This document shows positions 34,637 to 41,064 of a DNA stretch of 64,000 nucleotides, one piece after another. A program made the translations under genes and the position numbers. The notes beneath the pieces were generated by a model that did no database searches, had not been told where the DNA came from, and worked only from the letters and a program-made list of their open reading frames with translations. The stretch's first letter is position 1. The number at the start of each line of letters is the position of its first letter. Location of the stretch: the sequence record KT895374.1; one strand, written 5' to 3'.

Positions 34637-37363
34637 TTATACTGAAAAGATAATATTTTTATTTGACATAAATTCTTTATCATTAACATCAATATCATTT
34701 CCATTTAATAATATTAGATCAGATGAACTTGAATGGAACTCACTGTTATGTGAGATAATGAATACTTGTTCAATTCCTAGTTTCTTAATCTGATCATCTA
34801 ATAAAGATAGAAATAATCTTCTATTTTCTGTTGATAAAGCACCATCAATTTCATCAAGATATAAAATATTATATCTAGTGGTTTCCATTAATCTTTCAAT
34901 CATTCCCAAAGATAATGAAATAGTTGTTAGTGAAACCTCTCCTTGAGAAGCTTCTACAATATCTTTTAATTGAGTACCATCAGATTTTAGAACATTAACA
35001 AAGAAATCAGAAGAATTAATATCAAATTTAATTTTAAACTGGTTTCCATAGGCAATAGAAAGTAAATTATTAATTCTAATAGAAATGTCTTTTAAATAAT
35101 TATCAATAAAGAATAATGGAATACCTTTCTTTGGATCTAAAGCATCTTTAATCAAGGAATAAGTATCAAAATTCTTTTTAACGTTTTCTAAATCTTCAGT
35201 ATATCGTTCTAAAATTGTTAAATTTGCTCTTGTTTCGTTAATTTTGCTTTCAAGATTTTTTTCTTCTAATTTTTGATTCTTCAAAGTTTCATTAATGATT
35301 TTAATAATTGAGTTTTCCCTATCAATAATATCTTTCTTATGAGATAACTCTTTTTCTTTATTTTTATATTTTTCAAGTTCTTCTTTTTTATCTTCTTCTT
35401 GATTAAGAATTGAAATTAATGAATTGAAGATTTCAATTTTGTAACTAGATTTATTGATCTTATTAGTGAAATCTTCGATATCCTTTTTAATTTCTATCAT
35501 TTTATTTTTTTCTGAATTAAGTTCTAATTCGAGGTCTTTAATTTCTTCACGAATATTATCTAATAAAATCTTTTGTTTCTCATGGAGTTCAAGATTATTC
35601 TCTAACTCTCTAATGCGAGATTCTTCATTTTCAATGTTAGATTTTATTGTAACAGATTCCATGATCTCATTGGTATTGAATACTTTATTTAGATTACTAA
35701 TACCATATTTAGCAACTCTTAATAGTACTTCAGTAGGAGTTTCATCTTTAACAATAAACTCTTTAATTAATTCATTATTTTTCATCTTATAACTAAATGC
35801 ATTCAATTCTTTCATATAATCAATAAATTCTTTACGGTAAGTAATTTCTCTCTCAATAGTCTCTTTATTTTTAATTTCCATTTCTAGATTTGTTTTTAAA
35901 TCCTCTAATCTAGAATAATCATTATTCTTATAATCTAATGCTTTAACGATAAAAGGACATGTGTCAATAACACAATCAGATGGTCTGTTAGATAGAGTTT
36001 CTAGTAAATAATTATTAGAATTAATATGATTAATTTCCTCTCTTAATTGATTAATTCGATTAGAGGAGTTTTCTAGCTTTACTAGATAATTTTCAGCATC
36101 ATTAATATATGATGTGACAATATCAATAGTAATAGCATCAATAACATGGCTGTTTGTTTTGTTAATTAATGTTTCTACCCCATCTTTAATCTGAGATACT
36201 AAGTTACTATAGTTAGATATTTCATTTAAAGGAACATTTAGATCTTTATAGCTGTTGGAGTTAAGCTTATTAGTTAATACTGATAAACCCTCTTTACGAT
36301 TATTGATAGTTTCTCTTAAACTATCAATATCAATTTCATCATTTAAACTACTTTTCTTTTTCTTTAATGAATTATCAATCTTAAAAATATTCTCTTGGAT
36401 TGATTGTAAATCTTTATTCTTATCATCTAAGGCAGTTTTATAATTTATTAGCCTTTCAGTGGTCTCAGCTAGAAGTTTTTGTAATTTTTCTAAACTAAAT
36501 TCTTTTAATTCAGGATGTTTATTATATGCATTATCTTTAAATGCATAAAATTGTACAAGTTCTTTTTCTTCTGATTTAACCTTTTTAGAAATTGTTTGCA
36601 AGTCTTGTTCTAAGAATAATAATTCTCCATAACCTAATTCTTTTAAAATATTATTTATAGTAAATGATTTACTTAATACAGTCTTTTCATTTTCTTTTAT
36701 TGATTTTCTTATTTCTTCAATTTTTTCATTTGAAGATTTAAGAGATAATTCCATATTGTCTTTAGAATCTAACTTATCTAATTGACCTGATATACTTTTC
36801 ATAGTAGATTTAACTTCAGTAAATTTTTCTTTAACAATTTCAAATGCTTCTAGATACTCATCAATATTAGGTAGGAAATTATGCATATAGCTTTTTCTCT
36901 CTGAAGTTTTCATATTGATAAAAGTATTTACATTACTACCTAATCTCCCAATTCTAAAATAATCTTTACCTAAGTTTACCTCATCTTTAATACATTGATC
37001 AAAAGTTTTAATTCCACCATTTTCATTTAACTCTTTTCCATTTTTAGAGATAAATGATTTATTTTTAGATCCATAATGATGAACTATTACGTATTCATCT
37101 TTATCATCTTTTAGATGAATTTCTTTTAATCCATTTTCTCCCTCTAAAATTAAATTTTTTCTTTCATCATTACTACCTCTTAACGGATGAAGTAGGCTCA
37201 TCATAGTAGTTTTTCCAGATCCATTACCACCTAATAACATAATAAATCTATTCTTAGACTTTTTAAAATCTAATTCAACCTCTTTTACTCCTAACCCTGC
37301 AAATATTCCTGCAAAGTTTACAAATTTAGCATACATTACTTTCATAAATAAAACTTCCCCCAA
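34637..37363 (-). CDS. sbcC: SbcC/Rad50-like ATPase
   Basis: Walker A GGNGSGKTT, long coiled coil with Zn-hook CVIDTCPF, signature SQGE, Walker B LYLDEIDGAL, IISH. Confidence 0.92.
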   Translation of the reverse strand: MGEVLFMKVMYAKFVNFAGIFAGLGVKEVELDFKKSKNRFIMLLGGNGSGKTTMMSLLHPLRGSNDERKNLILEGENGLKEIHLKDDKDEYVIVHHYGSKNKSFISKNGKELNENGGIKTFDQCIKDEVNLGKDYFRIGRLGSNVNTFINMKTSERKSYMHNFLPNIDEYLEAFEIVKEKFTEVKSTMKSISGQLDKLDSKDNMELSLKSSNEKIEEIRKSIKENEKTVLSKSFTINNILKELGYGELLFLEQDLQTISKKVKSEEKELVQFYAFKDNAYNKHPELKEFSLEKLQKLLAETTERLINYKTALDDKNKDLQSIQENIFKIDNSLKKKKSSLNDEIDIDSLRETINNRKEGLSVLTNKLNSNSYKDLNVPLNEISNYSNLVSQIKDGVETLINKTNSHVIDAITIDIVTSYINDAENYLVKLENSSNRINQLREEINHINSNNYLLETLSNRPSDCVIDTCPFIVKALDYKNNDYSRLEDLKTNLEMEIKNKETIEREITYRKEFIDYMKELNAFSYKMKNNELIKEFIVKDETPTEVLLRVAKYGISNLNKVFNTNEIMESVTIKSNIENEESRIRELENNLELHEKQKILLDNIREEIKDLELELNSEKNKMIEIKKDIEDFTNKINKSSYKIEIFNSLISILNQEEDKKEELEKYKNKEKELSHKKDIIDRENSIIKIINETLKNQKLEEKNLESKINETRANLTILERYTEDLENVKKNFDTYSLIKDALDPKKGIPLFFIDNYLKDISIRINNLLSIAYGNQFKIKFDINSSDFFVNVLKSDGTQLKDIVEASQGEVSLTTISLSLGMIERLMETTRYNILYLDEIDGALSTENRRLFLSLLDDQIKKLGIEQVFIISHNSEFHSSSSDLILLNGNDIDVNDKEFMSNKNIIFSV

Positions 37364-37389
37364 TAAATTATTTTTGTCTATACAATTTA

Positions 37390-37401
37390 ATAATATATTT
37401 T
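37390..37401 (-). promoter_or_regulatory. Early-type promoter for SbcC/polymerase operon
   Basis: aaaatatattat on minus strand (TATATTAT core). Confidence 0.5.
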
Positions 37402-37461
37402 TTTATTTTAATTTATTTTTTTATGAATATAATTCATAACATTAAATTACATCCCCCATTA

Positions 37462-37508
37462 AAAATATAAACATGATTATCTATAATAGATAATCATGTT
37501 TATATTTT
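37462..37508 (-). terminator. Terminator hairpin
   Basis: aaaatataaacatgattatcta/tagataatcatgtttatatttt long stem. Confidence 0.8.
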
Positions 37509-38226
37509 ATTCTTCAGTAAATTCTACTACTTCATAAATGTTTCCGTCTTCATCTATACCTATATCCATACCATCATCATCTTTAGCAAATTTAACTATA
37601 GGAGAATCAGGAATATCTGGATTTTCTACTATTGCCTCTTCTACATTATCATAGCAGTAGTAATTACCTTCCACATCAATAACGAATATATAGCGTTCTT
37701 CTTTAATTTCTTGTATTTCATTAATTTCAGGTTCAACAACTTCTTCATCTTTATTCTCTTGTTGTAATCTCTTTTCAATTAGGTCGTCAAGTTCTTCATC
37801 ATTTTTCTGTGATCCGACACTGGATGATTTATTTTCTTCAATAAGTTTATCAAGATTCTTTTTATCCCCTTTTAAAATAAGATCATACATATTTTCAAGA
37901 AGAGGTTTTAAATTACTATCAGATCCATCAAGATCTGATTCAAGATCCTTAATAGCTTTAGCAACCTTAATATCTGTTTCAGATTTAACTTTTTTAGCAT
38001 TTATAATCTGCTGGATAATTGAAACTTTATTAGACTTTAGAGAAATTAAATTTGATGTTTGATCTTGTATAAATTTAAGATTAGCTCCAGATCGACTATT
38101 TTTAATTACATCATAATGTCCTTTTATTTCATCATAAAGTTCATTTGTTTTCCCCAATTCTTCATAAAGGAGATTCATTTCATTACTTACATCTAAATCT
38201 TTAATATCTTCTCTGCTCATTAGCAA
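37507..38226 (-). CDS. Late hypothetical protein
   Basis: 239 aa, SD gggg, late promoter 38245..38256. Confidence 0.7.
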   Translation of the reverse strand: MLMSREDIKDLDVSNEMNLLYEELGKTNELYDEIKGHYDVIKNSRSGANLKFIQDQTSNLISLKSNKVSIIQQIINAKKVKSETDIKVAKAIKDLESDLDGSDSNLKPLLENMYDLILKGDKKNLDKLIEENKSSSVGSQKNDEELDDLIEKRLQQENKDEEVVEPEINEIQEIKEERYIFVIDVEGNYYCYDNVEEAIVENPDIPDSPIVKFAKDDDGMDIGIDEDGNIYEVVEFTEE

Positions 38227-38244
38227 TTTCCCCTTTTAGTATTC

Positions 38245-38256
38245 TAATATTTTGTT
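38245..38256 (-). promoter_or_regulatory. Late promoter
   Basis: aaca-aaatat-ta. Confidence 0.65.
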
Positions 38257-38285
38257 TTTATAATACGTAAGTAAATAAATTTTCA

Positions 38286-38297
38286 AGTATATATTAT
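38286..38297 (+). promoter_or_regulatory. Early-type promoter upstream of ncRNA candidate
   Basis: agtatatattat. Confidence 0.6.
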
Positions 38298-38299
38298 AA

Positions 38300-38753
38300 T
38301 GGTAACGATATCGAAACATTAGCCTTTCTGTTGTTTATATTCATATAGAATAATTTTGGGAAATGTTTGTTCATTTACACGGAAACTTATACGTTGCCCG
38401 TAGCTTTATTGTCAATAATAAAACAAGCATTAAACACAAGAAATAAACAGACAATAAAACTTGGCATTGAATGATATATTATCTAAATCGGGTAGACACT
38501 CATCAAGAAGCTACATAACTACCAGTGTATGAACGATAGAGTAAAACACACTCTAAAAAGATATATCATTCTCCCCAAAATAGAGAAGGTACGGTGGGAG
38601 GAGAATTGTATGAGAAATTCCAATATGGTAACAATCACCGTTTCCCAAAATTATCTATGGAAAGAAAAACAATTTAAGGTTAATGTTCTTTTATATAAAT
38701 AAATGGATGAGAGAGTTCTTAGTTGGGGGTTTCCCCAACTAAGGGCTTTTTTT
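38300..38753 (+). ncRNA. Large structured non-coding RNA candidate of unknown class
   Basis: Nested long-range helices 38315-26/38676-87, 38345-65/38639-58, 38405-13/38450-58, 38469-79/38561-71 with G-U pairs; bounded by promoter and terminator; no credible ORF. Confidence 0.6.
38716..38753 (+). terminator. Strong intrinsic terminator
   Basis: cttagttgggg-gttt-ccccaactaag then T-tract. Confidence 0.85.
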
Positions 38754-38774
38754 GGCAAAGGGAGGATATTGAAA

Positions 38775-39503
38775 TTGGGATTTTTGAAAAAATTATTTGG
38801 TAAAAAGACAAAAAAAGATGAAGAAATTGAATTATTAAAAGACATCATTGAAAGTAACACTCAAATTATGAAAAATATGGATAAGAAAATTAATCTATTA
38901 GAGGAGAGTATAGAAAATGAAGTTGCATCTAGCATAGAAAATGAAACAAAAGAGAAGAAAAAGTTAATTGAAACTGAACAAGAAATTTCACACTTTATTA
39001 GTAATTACTTATCATATTTTAAACTTGATAGAAATGGAAAATTCTATATCACTGAAAATTATGATCTAATAAAGGACTTTGATGATCTGTTATTTATTAT
39101 AATTCAAATGGTTAAAATAGGTGAAAGTAAAACAGAATATGAGGGAACTTATAAAGGTAATAGTATTAAGTTGAAAATATTTAATACTACAGGTGATCCT
39201 GAAGTCTGGTATTCCTTAAATAGTAGTCCAATGATTAGTAAAGAGACAGTTGGAATTACTTTCTTGAAAAAGTTTATAAATGATATTAAAGAAGATATTG
39301 TTAACTTTCCTAGTGTAACTACGCATTCACTATTTGAAGTGAAAGGAAGAGAGTATTCTTATATACTTGCAAATAATGAAAGATCCTGCTATTACATCTT
39401 AGGGGATAAAAATAAGGAAACTCCAATTAAGAGAGTTAAAAGAGTTAGAGGTAAATGTTATATAAAAAGTATTAGATCTTCCTTAATATATAGAATGAAG
39501 TAG
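38775..39503 (+). CDS. Hypothetical protein (MGFLKKLFGKK amphipathic start, coiled coil)
   Basis: SD ggagg 38761-65 then TTG 38775 in frame of ORF 38703..39503. Confidence 0.7.
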   Translation: MGFLKKLFGKKTKKDEEIELLKDIIESNTQIMKNMDKKINLLEESIENEVASSIENETKEKKKLIETEQEISHFISNYLSYFKLDRNGKFYITENYDLIKDFDDLLFIIIQMVKIGESKTEYEGTYKGNSIKLKIFNTTGDPEVWYSLNSSPMISKETVGITFLKKFINDIKEDIVNFPSVTTHSLFEVKGREYSYILANNERSCYYILGDKNKETPIKRVKRVRGKCYIKSIRSSLIYRMK

Positions 39504-39549
39504 TATTATTTAAATATAATAACGAAAGGGAATAGATCCCTTTCGTTAT

Positions 39550-41064
39550 TTAATCTCTAGTTAAGGAATAAACGCATTGTACCGCTTCATTTCCAATTTT
39601 CCTAGAGTTTCTACCCATTTGATCAAGTAGATTCTTTTTTTCCCAGATTAATCTATCTGCTTCCTTGTTAGCTTCTAAACTGAAAACTCCACGTAACGAT
39701 ACTGTATCACCGTCATAATCTCCTCCCAAAGCTTGAAGATACCCATTATATGGTACTACAGTGTCACCAAAAAGTTCCTCATCAGCAGGATAGTCTGGAT
39801 ACACTACTGGATAATCTGGCAGATATCTATCTTGTAATTTCTGTGGTTTTGTTTCTCTTGTAGATATAATTTTAATTTTACTAGGATAGATATTTTGATA
39901 TTGTTCAATAGGATATCGAGTTACATAAACATGTTTATCCTTACATATATCTACAGCCGCAATAAATAATAAATCAGTTAGTGTAAAGTTTCTCTTAAGT
40001 TCTTCAGTATGAAGTTTAATAGGGTACTCATTACCGTCATCGGCTTTAATCATAATTGAATTAAATCTACTTTCAACTGATTTAATAAAGAGAGACATTA
40101 GTTTCTTAATTTCTTCTTCAGAAAACTGTTCTTTCAAGTTACTAACTTTGATCTCTTCACCTTTTTCATTCTTAAACTTACTCAACTCAACTTCACGTTC
40201 TCCAATATAATCTTGAATATACTTAATGAAAAAAGGATAAAATAATACAATGACTTGAGATAGAGGAACACCAGTCCATCCAAATCTAATAGGATTATCT
40301 TCCCATTTATTAGACTTGAATCTAGGAGCTGAAATTACACTACGGGTAGCGTAGTCAATAGCTTTACCCAATAAGCTTTTTTGAATCAATCCATTCTTTT
40401 TGGCAATACTACTAGTGTAGTAGTCATATATATCATATAATAAACTTTGAATAGATGATTCTGTAATAGAACTCATATAATCATAACCCTCTGAATCAGG
40501 TAAAGATTGAGAATAACGAATTAATTTTGCATACTTATCATTTATTTCATCTACAGCCTTAATAGTATCGTTTGCAGTTTTTGAAGGATTATAATCTCTT
40601 GAATAAGCAGGAGTTACTAAAAACTTATCAATAAATATATCATCTTTTTTTGTCTTTTTAAGAAGTTCTAAATAGTTTTCTCTACGATAACTACCAGTAT
40701 TTCTAAACCTTAAATCATCATAGATAGAATAAAAATAAGAAACCCCTGTTTTTCCATTCTCGTTGTCTTCTACTAATTGTCCATTTACTACACTAAAGTA
40801 TTTCCTACCATTTAGTACATCCTGAATTTTCTTATCCATTGATGTTAAAAGTTTATACATAACTGGATGTACAAATTTTCTTTTCAAATTAATATATCCA
40901 AATAAAACTTTACGTTCTTTACTGCCAGGAAATCCAAATATTTCTGTTGAAAATAGACCATCTTCCATTGGAATATTACCCATATTAAAATAAATTGGAT
41001 TTTTAACTTCCTTACACATATGAGTTTCTATGAACCGATCAATATCTAATAAATCAATCTTCAT
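39550..41064 (-). CDS. rpoC: RNA polymerase beta' N-terminal half with catalytic motif (probably virion RNAP)
   Basis: DGLFSTEIFG, LLGKAIDYATRSVIS, VTRYPI, ALGGDYDGDTV (NADFDGD equivalent); late promoter. Confidence 0.9.
   Translation of the reverse strand: MKIDLLDIDRFIETHMCKEVKNPIYFNMGNIPMEDGLFSTEIFGFPGSKERKVLFGYINLKRKFVHPVMYKLLTSMDKKIQDVLNGRKYFSVVNGQLVEDNENGKTGVSYFYSIYDDLRFRNTGSYRRENYLELLKKTKKDDIFIDKFLVTPAYSRDYNPSKTANDTIKAVDEINDKYAKLIRYSQSLPDSEGYDYMSSITESSIQSLLYDIYDYYTSSIAKKNGLIQKSLLGKAIDYATRSVISAPRFKSNKWEDNPIRFGWTGVPLSQVIVLFYPFFIKYIQDYIGEREVELSKFKNEKGEEIKVSNLKEQFSEEEIKKLMSLFIKSVESRFNSIMIKADDGNEYPIKLHTEELKRNFTLTDLLFIAAVDICKDKHVYVTRYPIEQYQNIYPSKIKIISTRETKPQKLQDRYLPDYPVVYPDYPADEELFGDTVVPYNGYLQALGGDYDGDTVSLRGVFSLEANKEADRLIWEKKNLLDQMGRNSRKIGNEAVQCVYSLTRD

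Follow-up and report, generated by a model that had tools for sequence, protein, structure and literature searches.

A conserved structured RNA with an embedded reading frame in Takahashivirus-like jumbo phages

We analyzed a stretch of 64,000 nt of sequence record KT895374.1 (the window), which in a blastn search is 100% identical to Bacillus phage vB_BpuM-BpSp (BpSp), a jumbo phage of the AR9/PBS1 type (genus Takahashivirus) whose DNA contains uracil. The subject of this study is an RNA encoded on the + strand in the 554-bp gap between the genes gp209 (37507-38220, - strand) and gp211 (38775-39503, + strand). From the letters of the window alone, an earlier sequence-only reading had proposed a large, ornate non-coding RNA with its own promoter and terminator at this place. 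We find that the RNA is a member of a real, previously undescribed family of phage RNAs, the fold of which covaries, and that one strand of its closing helix contains a small open reading frame (ORF) preceded by a conserved Shine–Dalgarno sequence (SD) and an AUG. The proposal of a large structured RNA therefore stands, but the attribute non-coding has become doubtful. We tentatively interpret the Takahashivirus-like phage RNA as a self-gated small-ORF RNA, a dual-function RNA which regulates itself, and give this interpretation a probability of roughly 45%. Literature searches did not find a published description of the RNA.

The analysis rests on a comparison of syntenic loci. By blastn the RNA region was found in AR9, Goe21 and Internexus, the latter two being nearly identical to AR9. 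In addition, gp209 was searched in a large protein collection and the contigs encoding gp209 homologues were fetched, which yielded eight distinct full-length metagenomic loci (L007, L009, L014, L015, L016 with its identical copy L017, L018, L019 and L020). Together with BpSp and AR9 they form the set of ten distinct sequences to which the counts below refer. In all full-length loci the divergent gp209 is followed by the early promoter, an RNA of 443–519 nt, the terminator and the gp211 homologue. The internal order of promoter, core, SD-AUG-ORF, rod and terminator is likewise common to all ten homologues. Three further contigs (L010–L012) end in this region and retain the promoter alone, except L010, which has the first part of the RNA too. 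The flanking proteins of BpSp and its relatives are ~38–45% identical, whereas several blocks of the RNA are nearly invariant. There is a single copy of the RNA per locus, and nhmmer found no second copy in the window or in the other loci. When IMG/VR was scanned with the DNA motif and with the gp209/gp211 proteins or alignments, AR9 itself was the sole match. The single match of the metagenome motif scan (L013, a eukaryote-like sequence in which all other motifs are missing) and the single match of the GTDB genome scans (L022, inside an ORF of a Schleiferiaceae metagenome-assembled genome) were rejected as chance. In blastn comparisons with cultured phages the RNAs of clade 2 and of L014 matched Takahashivirus by the terminator alone.

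The + strand folds with a minimum free energy (MFE) of -122.6 kcal/mol compared with -83.1 ± 5.9 kcal/mol for dinucleotide shuffles (z = -6.76), and none of 100 shuffles was as good. In all ten sequences an imperfect rod of 44–63 bp encloses a conserved core of 230–280 nt. This rod pairs the first 60–75 nt of the RNA with the last 60–90 nt before the terminator; it begins at nt 1–3 (nt 12 in BpSp), and its partner site lies just upstream of the terminator. In the MFE fold of BpSp the 5′ strand (38315-38367, nt 12–64 of the RNA) pairs with nt 331–384, that is with the 3′ strand at 38634-38687 inside the mini-ORF. The pairs of this rod that had been read from the BpSp sequence, namely 38315-26 with 38676-87, UUGUUU with AAACAA and 38345-65 with 38639-58, are all there, and so is the ACGG..CCGU hairpin. 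The outer rod arms are ~50–70% identical between lineages, yet they are self-complementary in each of them. Comparing the arms without an alignment, we obtained mean pairing energies of -26.6 kcal/mol for cognate and -11.3 kcal/mol for non-cognate outer arms, and of -23.2 kcal/mol versus -12.4 kcal/mol for the inner arms.

Covariation was scored on the 47 pairs which MAFFT kept in register; they belong to the inner rod, helix A1, helix C, part of the anti-SD/SD pairing and the terminator, and RNAalifold was also run. Over the ten sequences 94.7% of the cells are paired as compared with 41–50% when the partners were slid, and both-sided changes occur in 22 of the 47 pairs versus 3–10 in the slid controls. 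The observed values were reached by none of 500 shuffles. G·U pairs account for 58 of the 444 paired cells (13%). Since a G·U pair would become an A·C mismatch in the opposite strand or at the DNA level, we conclude that the structure is that of the + strand RNA and not of a DNA-level element. The sequence-only reading had taken the G-U pairs of BpSp as a sign of selection at the RNA level and had named covariation among homologues as a check. On both counts the comparison bears it out: the covariation is strong, and selection on the RNA fold is supported by the aligned sequences.

The RNA has the layout of a separate early transcription unit, bracketed by a promoter of the virion RNA polymerase type and a strong terminator, as judged from its sequence motifs. 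The early-promoter consensus of AR9, AAATATATATTAT-(6N)-G, has been defined experimentally and is used by the virion RNA polymerase (PMC5312081). In BpSp the core AAGTATATATTAT at 38285-38297 fits this consensus, and because of this match the transcript is predicted to start 6 nt further on at ~38304 and to extend to 38753 (~450 nt). The promoter motif is found at the identical position in 13 of 13 homologous loci. A scan for sigma-70 promoters, which are not relevant to the phage polymerase, gave no enrichment. The intrinsic terminator (38709-38753) consists of a perfect GC-rich stem (core stem 38718-38743) and a U7 tract (38747-38753) and covaries (helix 6). Thus both signals of the earlier proposal, the promoter and the terminator hairpin at 38718-38753, could be confirmed. 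The terminator of clade 2 and of L014 is ~95% identical to that of AR9. As a side observation, the element GACUAUGGGUGGGGGCAACCCCACCCAUAGGGCUUUUUUU (window 38709-38753; compared in L009, L014, L016, L019 and L020) keeps this identity amid flanking proteins of ~40% identity and may therefore do more than terminate transcription.

The core architecture derived from the comparison comprises the helices A/A′ and C/C′, hairpin B and the pseudoknotted helix D/D′, and it differs from the MFE fold of the single sequence. This is also where the earlier inner fold has to be revised. Its helix UUUAUUGUC/GACAAUAAA around the A-rich loop, the pairing GAAUGAUAUAU/AUAUAUCAUUC and GGGAG/CUCCC are present in BpSp, but UUUAUUGUC/GACAAUAAA and ACGGUG/CACCGU are not conserved in the relatives. 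The 5′ strand of helix A, UGUUCAUUUACAC (38368-38380), pairs with GUGUAUGAACG (38525-38535), in the comparative form GUUCAUUUACAC with GUGUAUUGAAC. This pairing follows from the comparison and from covariation, a U-A pair being replaced by C-G between clades, and the duplex energies of the ten sequences range from -10 to -13 kcal/mol. Hairpin B (38381-38399) is variable in sequence and in length (11–43 nt in the relatives); a stem was predicted for nine sequences, L014 with its 11-nt segment being the exception. In helix C the near-invariant GUAGCU (38400-38405) pairs with AGCUAC (38509-38514). The comparative form is GUAGCU with GGCUAC, and the few single-sided changes retain the pairing by means of U-A and G-U. 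The V1 linker which follows (38406-38468; 39–63 nt in the relatives) is mostly single-stranded, A-rich and G-poor, with a pooled composition of 45% A and 12% G (entire RNA: 36% A, 17% G), and its sequence is not conserved. A role of the exposed loop as guide or template, suggested previously, gains nothing from these data: the loop is conserved in position and A-richness only, and there is no complementary target in the 64-kb window. An antisense or guide RNA was likewise rejected as a candidate, the matches within the window (12–19 nt) being at chance level.

The 5′ strand of helix D, GAAUGAUAUAUU (38469-38480), pairs with D′, GAUAUAUCAUUC (38560-38571), and crosses both C/C′ and A/A′. The pairing (GAAUGGU... 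with ...ACCAUUC) comprises 10–13 bp in seven of the ten sequences and a conserved core of 6–7 bp in L016, L020 and L019. BpSp shows a compensating change from G-C to A-U; U-G and G-U variants are found elsewhere. The extensions of the helix differ in sequence, and complementarity is kept wherever they form. As D is located inside the loop of C/C′ and D′ outside A′, D/D′ is a pseudoknot or else an alternative state. When D/D′ is forced, the cost is 0–4 kcal/mol. Each of the two nested states, if imposed on the fold, lies 0–5 kcal/mol above the MFE in nine sequences, the exception being L019 with 8.2 kcal/mol.

D′ overlaps with the anti-SD AUUCUCC (38568-38574), so that the segment 38560-38574 contains four shared nucleotides, AUUC, which could serve as a toggle. 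The anti-SD can pair with the SD GGAGAAU (38600-38606) within the conserved block GGAGAGGAGAAU. Seven contiguous base pairs are formed in eight of the ten sequences, and across clades position 5 is U-A, U-G or C-G, which is a compensatory series. Because D′ and the anti-SD share AUUC, this tetranucleotide has two conserved and covarying partners, the GAAU of D and the GAAU of the SD. In ensembles calculated without pseudoknots the SD is partly occluded (mean unpaired probability 0.15–0.64); six of the ten MFE folds pair it with a site in or beside the D′/anti-SD segment. The pairings are mutually exclusive and include the SD, and in its logic the predicted exchange of partners by AUUC corresponds to the translational expression platform of a riboswitch. 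In the predicted folds we also find the combination of 5′–3′ fold-back closure and SD sequestration which characterizes the mRNAs of type I toxin–antitoxin systems.

The tract had been regarded as ORF-free. This is refuted by a mini-ORF of 30 codons at 38610-38702 on the + strand, which is preceded by GGAGGAGAAU, is annotated in GenBank as gp210 and has counterparts in all relatives. The GGAGAGGAGAAU block, an AUG 3–10 nt further on and an open frame of 26–41 codons are present in all ten sequences. A shuffle test was valid for seven of the ten sequences, the segment to be shuffled being too short in the remaining three; in these seven a frame like this would be open by chance with a probability of 0.04–0.12 per sequence. 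The other two frames usually have 2–6 stops over the same span. The mini-ORF covers essentially the whole 3′ strand of the rod. It starts 8–11 codons ahead of the rod in nine sequences (~2 codons in L018) and stops 1–18 nt past the rod base in nine, whereas in AR9 the predicted rod extends 11 nt beyond the stop. The encoded peptide is barely constrained (pairwise dN/dS, the ratio of nonsynonymous to synonymous substitution rates, 0.7–1.4). Its sole common motif, L-[E/G]-K-x-x-[M/V/A]-E, is encoded at a rod-paired stretch and changes together with compensatory changes of the 5′ strand. No family match was obtained for the peptides, which are neither hydrophobic nor recognizable in any other way. 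Their grand averages of hydropathy are -1.3 to 0.8, the best 15-residue window reaches at most 1.47 and there is no transmembrane segment, so that a membrane toxin was rejected. No conserved ORF was found on the - strand across the loci, AR9 g143 included. The latter (L002 4322-4474, - strand, 50 aa) overlaps the 3′ part of the RNA and the terminator on the opposite strand and is probably spurious, because the other nine loci have no conserved counterpart.

Two phages provide natural mutants of the RNA. Compared with AR9, PBS1 (MF360957.1; L023 26850-27420) has a clean deletion of 109 bp between CTGT direct repeats. The deletion (corresponding to about 38300-38405 of the window) removes the 5′ strands of the rod, of helix A and of helix C as well as hairpin B, and the remainder of the locus is identical to AR9. 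By its spacing LC680884.1 has the same deletion. In AR9 itself the promoter core carries an A>G change and reads TATGTATTAT. These are independent lesions in two long-passaged laboratory phages, while promoter and RNA are intact in the recent isolates Goe21 and Internexus and in all environmental sequences. We therefore infer that the RNA is dispensable or counter-selected during laboratory propagation, and it appears to be accessory rather than essential. Accessory genes for host interaction or anti-defence are often lost in laboratory propagation.

The AR9 transcriptome (PMC5312081) lists no transcription start site (TSS) at the predicted start of the RNA. At 5, 20 and 40 min the g143 region reaches 39, 531 and 1799 expression units, compared with 0.8, 166 and 7042 for g142 and 0.4, 42 and 246 for g144 (PMC5312081). 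The counts for g143 are ambiguous, since the mapping of the reads was strand-specific and the annotated gene lies on the - strand. A late TSS on the + strand at AR9 115851 (Table S3, PMC5312081) is situated beyond the 3′ end of g142 and gives rise to a transcript antisense through g142. This transcript would enter the RNA locus, and in AR9 the RNA sequence may thus be made late within a longer transcript.

Downstream of the RNA lies gp211, which carries its own SD and accompanies the RNA wherever it occurs. In Listeria phage LPJP1 and in contig L008 the gp209 homologue is directly beside the polymerase gene and both the RNA and gp211 are missing; no gp211 homologue was found elsewhere in L008. 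As RNA and gp211 are present or absent together, we regard them as one inserted module. The protein belongs to phrog_27413, a PHROG without an assigned function. A word-based protein search returned only gp211 itself, and neither a Pfam match nor a PDB fold match for its AlphaFold2 model was obtained. The model, with a predicted local distance difference test score of 86, has a long N-terminal helix of ~65 residues followed by an alpha/beta domain and suggests an orphan fold, always found with the RNA. There is no support from Pfam, PHROG or PDB for gp211 being a recognizable RNA-binding protein or enzyme. A retron ncRNA (msr-msd) was also rejected as a candidate, as it calls for an adjacent reverse transcriptase and gp211 has no Pfam domain or PDB match.

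How could such an RNA work? According to our favored interpretation of a self-gated small-ORF RNA, formation of D/D′ by the core would occupy the anti-SD and ribosomes could load; otherwise AUUCUCC would close the SD. A translating ribosome would have to unzip the entire rod. As the frame is conserved and the peptide is not, the act of translation, which would open a closed, 5′-end-protected, dsRNA-like form, should outweigh the peptide in importance. The output of this open/closed switch is probably conditional; it could concern how long the RNA lives, how far the core or the A-rich loop is exposed, or a partner, for instance gp211.

Several points weigh against this interpretation. Covariation support for the pseudoknot is thin, because C/C′ and the center of D/D′ are nearly invariant. 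Translation of the mini-ORF is a prediction from sequence. In BpSp the best-spaced AUG opens a frame other than that of the remaining nine sequences; the shared frame is opened there by a TTG at 38606 (38606-38677, 23 codons, with the ..KLSME.. motif common to the relatives). This difference fits a role of translation and not of the peptide, but the ORF could also be incidental. The sole transcriptome is that of AR9 with its mutated promoter, where no TSS is listed and the counts of the overlapping g143 are strand-ambiguous. Finally, the comparative set of ten sequences represents about five or six lineages.

A bolder version of the self-gated RNA, which we consider speculative and rather doubtful, sees in it a new RNA device. 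In this case a pseudoknotted sensor domain would gate the ribosomes, and the only job of the ORF would be the unzipping of the ~50-bp rod early in infection. The sensor would possibly be a new aptamer or the binding site of a protein such as gp211, and the change between the closed dsRNA-like and the open form could for example time, sense or counter a host response. On this view the losses in the laboratory-passaged AR9 and PBS1 would point to a conditional role tied to defence or host range.

If, on the other hand, the peptide were the effector, the RNA would be the mRNA of a fast-evolving early micro-protein of 23–41 aa involved in host takeover or anti-defence, and the leader and the rod would only control its timing, dose and stability. 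Conservation of SD, AUG and open frame in all ten sequences is in line with this, as is the weak peptide motif at a fixed distance from the start. A dN/dS near or above 1 is also expected of an arms-race protein, and the early gene is lost or damaged in laboratory-passaged phages like accessory anti-defence genes. We nevertheless consider this explanation unlikely. The motif falls on a site which is constrained by the rod, and its G/E/P/S and M/V/A/I variants track the compensatory changes of the 5′ strand. Moreover the well-spaced AUG of BpSp is in a different frame, and the peptides show neither a family match nor a recognizable character.

Unlikely, too, is a purely non-coding, trans-acting RNA which would serve as ribonucleoprotein scaffold, decoy or sponge, possibly for gp211, host RNase III, RNA polymerase or Hfq, with the SD-like block and the ORF being structural by-products. 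The large conserved pseudoknotted core, the long dsRNA-like rod and the exposed A-rich loop would suit such a role, as would the unconstrained peptide, the constant linkage to gp211 with its unknown fold and the lack of an Rfam family, which the RNA has in common with other orphan large RNAs. Against this, an AUG is kept 3–10 nt past the SD in spite of a variable spacer, the frame is open along essentially the entire rod in ten of ten sequences, and the window contains no complementary target.

We further considered that the RNA could be the leader or attenuator of gp211, in which read-through of the terminator would depend on translation of a leader ORF or on a core-bound factor. The arrangement of promoter, leader ORF, terminator and gene is classical, the RNA and gp211 are gained or lost jointly, and the stop of the ORF is located -2 to 22 nt from the terminator stem. 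Furthermore AR9 g144, the homologue of gp211, has no mapped TSS of its own and is expressed at a small fraction of the upstream region. However, we found no antiterminator, upstream pairing with the 5′ half of the terminator being no better than in shuffles (P 0.07–0.91), and in four of the ten sequences the stop is 15–22 nt away from the stem, too far for occlusion by the ribosome. The terminator with its perfect GC-rich stem and U7 tract, the SD of gp211 itself and a leader peptide without conserved regulatory codons also speak against attenuation, which we regard as very improbable.

An element acting at the DNA level (an origin, a packaging site or a cruciform) can practically be dismissed, as can a decayed gene or a fold that arose by chance: the - strand folds well too (z = -5.9), as any inverted repeat would, but the 13% of G·U cells, the covariation across ten sequences, the promoter and terminator which frame the fold exactly and the lack of conserved minus-strand ORFs all argue against these explanations.

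Few structured RNAs of more than 400 nt have solid covariation support, and every new class of them has led to new biology. The present one is specific to jumbo phages which have dU (deoxyuridine)-containing DNA and bring along an RNA polymerase; its synthesis is predicted to take place only minutes after infection. The layout of the RNA is uncommon: the frame is conserved as a frame and not as a peptide, forms one strand of the closing helix and is coupled to a toggle of SD, anti-SD and anti-anti-SD. Should our interpretation of the self-gated RNA be true, it would be a clear natural example of the ribosome acting as a helicase that switches the global fold of an RNA. AR9 and PBS1 are ready natural mutants for which Goe21 and Internexus are the intact comparators. 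With regard to annotation, AR9 g143 should be corrected as probably spurious and BpSp gp210 as part of the RNA element.

In the wider neighborhood an SbcC-like ATPase is encoded upstream of the locus and the N-terminal part of the beta′ subunit of the phage multisubunit RNA polymerase downstream of it. Between the SbcC-like gene and gp209 we observed a perfect 20-bp AT-rich hairpin, AAATATAAACATGATTATCTA/TAGATAATCATGTTTATATTT (37463-37507), possibly a bidirectional terminator. The polymerase gene itself differs between the phages. In AR9 the beta′ gene g145 contains Rfam matches to a group I intron (86.7 bits) and to a group II intron domain (55.2 bits) at L002 5757-6068 and 7781-7865, with homing endonuclease genes nearby, and its BpSp orthologue (window 39550-41064) is an uninterrupted ORF of 504 codons.

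Comparison with known RNA families was undertaken with Rfam 15, whose families include 6S, GOLLD, ROOL, OLE, HEARO, raiA, riboswitches, T-box, group I/II introns, RNase P, SRP and tmRNA. There were no matches in the window at the gathering score, and at E ≤ 10 the region 38100-38900 gave miRNA-like noise only. The RNA regions of the nine homologous loci had no match at E ≤ 1, with the AR9 group I and group II introns being found as positive control. ARAGORN detected no tRNA or tmRNA in 37000-40000. Hence the claim of a new phage RNA is supported, no Rfam family matching any member, and so does the earlier statement that the hallmarks of tRNA, tmRNA, RNase P, SRP and group I/II introns are missing. 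None of the specific functional guesses which accompanied these claims gained support in our analysis.

One of these guesses was a 6S-like decoy. Both the phage RNA, which is a candidate abundant and stable RNA, and 6S RNA have their ends paired in a long rod. But 6S RNA is ~190 nt long, has a central bubble resembling an open promoter and has no ORF, whereas the phage rod closes a multibranch domain of 230–280 nt instead of a bubble and contains an SD and an ORF; RF00013 (6S) gave no match even at E = 10. The 6S-like decoy thus fits poorly. GOLLD, ROOL, OLE, HEARO and raiA resemble the phage RNA in exceeding 400 nt, in their multi-domain covarying structure, in their association with phages and in that their biochemical function is not established. 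The phage RNA, however, matches none of their covariance models, and to our knowledge none of these RNAs embeds a conserved SD-AUG-ORF in its closing helix.

Closer parallels are found among RNAs that contain a short ORF. The hok mRNA of hok/Sok (plasmid R1) is also a structured mRNA of ~400 nt whose 5′ end is folded onto its 3′ end in a closed, stable form that is translationally inert, and a complementary box further upstream masks the SD of its small ORF. In contrast to hok, the phage peptide is not hydrophobic, the ORF itself is one strand of the closing rod and the leader is a conserved pseudoknotted domain of 230–280 nt. There is no sequence or Rfam similarity between the two, and the - strand of the phage locus has no conserved ORF and only weak sigma-70-like matches.

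RNAIII of Staphylococcus aureus is 514 nt long and encodes the 26-aa delta-haemolysin, and SR1/SR1P of Bacillus subtilis is dual-function as well. With these the phage RNA has in common that it is a large multi-helix RNA with long-range 5′–3′ pairing and a short, here predicted, ORF, and with its supported structure and its conserved SD, AUG and open frame it has the signature of a candidate dual-function RNA. In RNAIII and SR1, however, conserved functional peptides are encoded in internal hairpins, whereas here an unconstrained peptide is encoded along the closing rod, and there is no homology to either RNA. The glutamine-II and ‘Downstream-peptide’ RNAs of cyanobacteria and cyanophages likewise have a pseudoknotted domain ahead of a short and poorly conserved ORF, with the SD engaged in an alternative pairing, and they too occur in phages. 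The glutamine-II aptamer, however, has a length of ~60 nt and a known ligand. The phage domain is 4–5 times larger and adds a 5′–3′ rod which engulfs the ORF as well as its own terminator, and it has no match in Rfam. By analogy of mechanism, the closest relatives of the phage RNA would therefore be the hok-type fold-back mRNAs, the dual-function RNAs RNAIII and SR1, and riboswitches with tiny unconserved ORFs.

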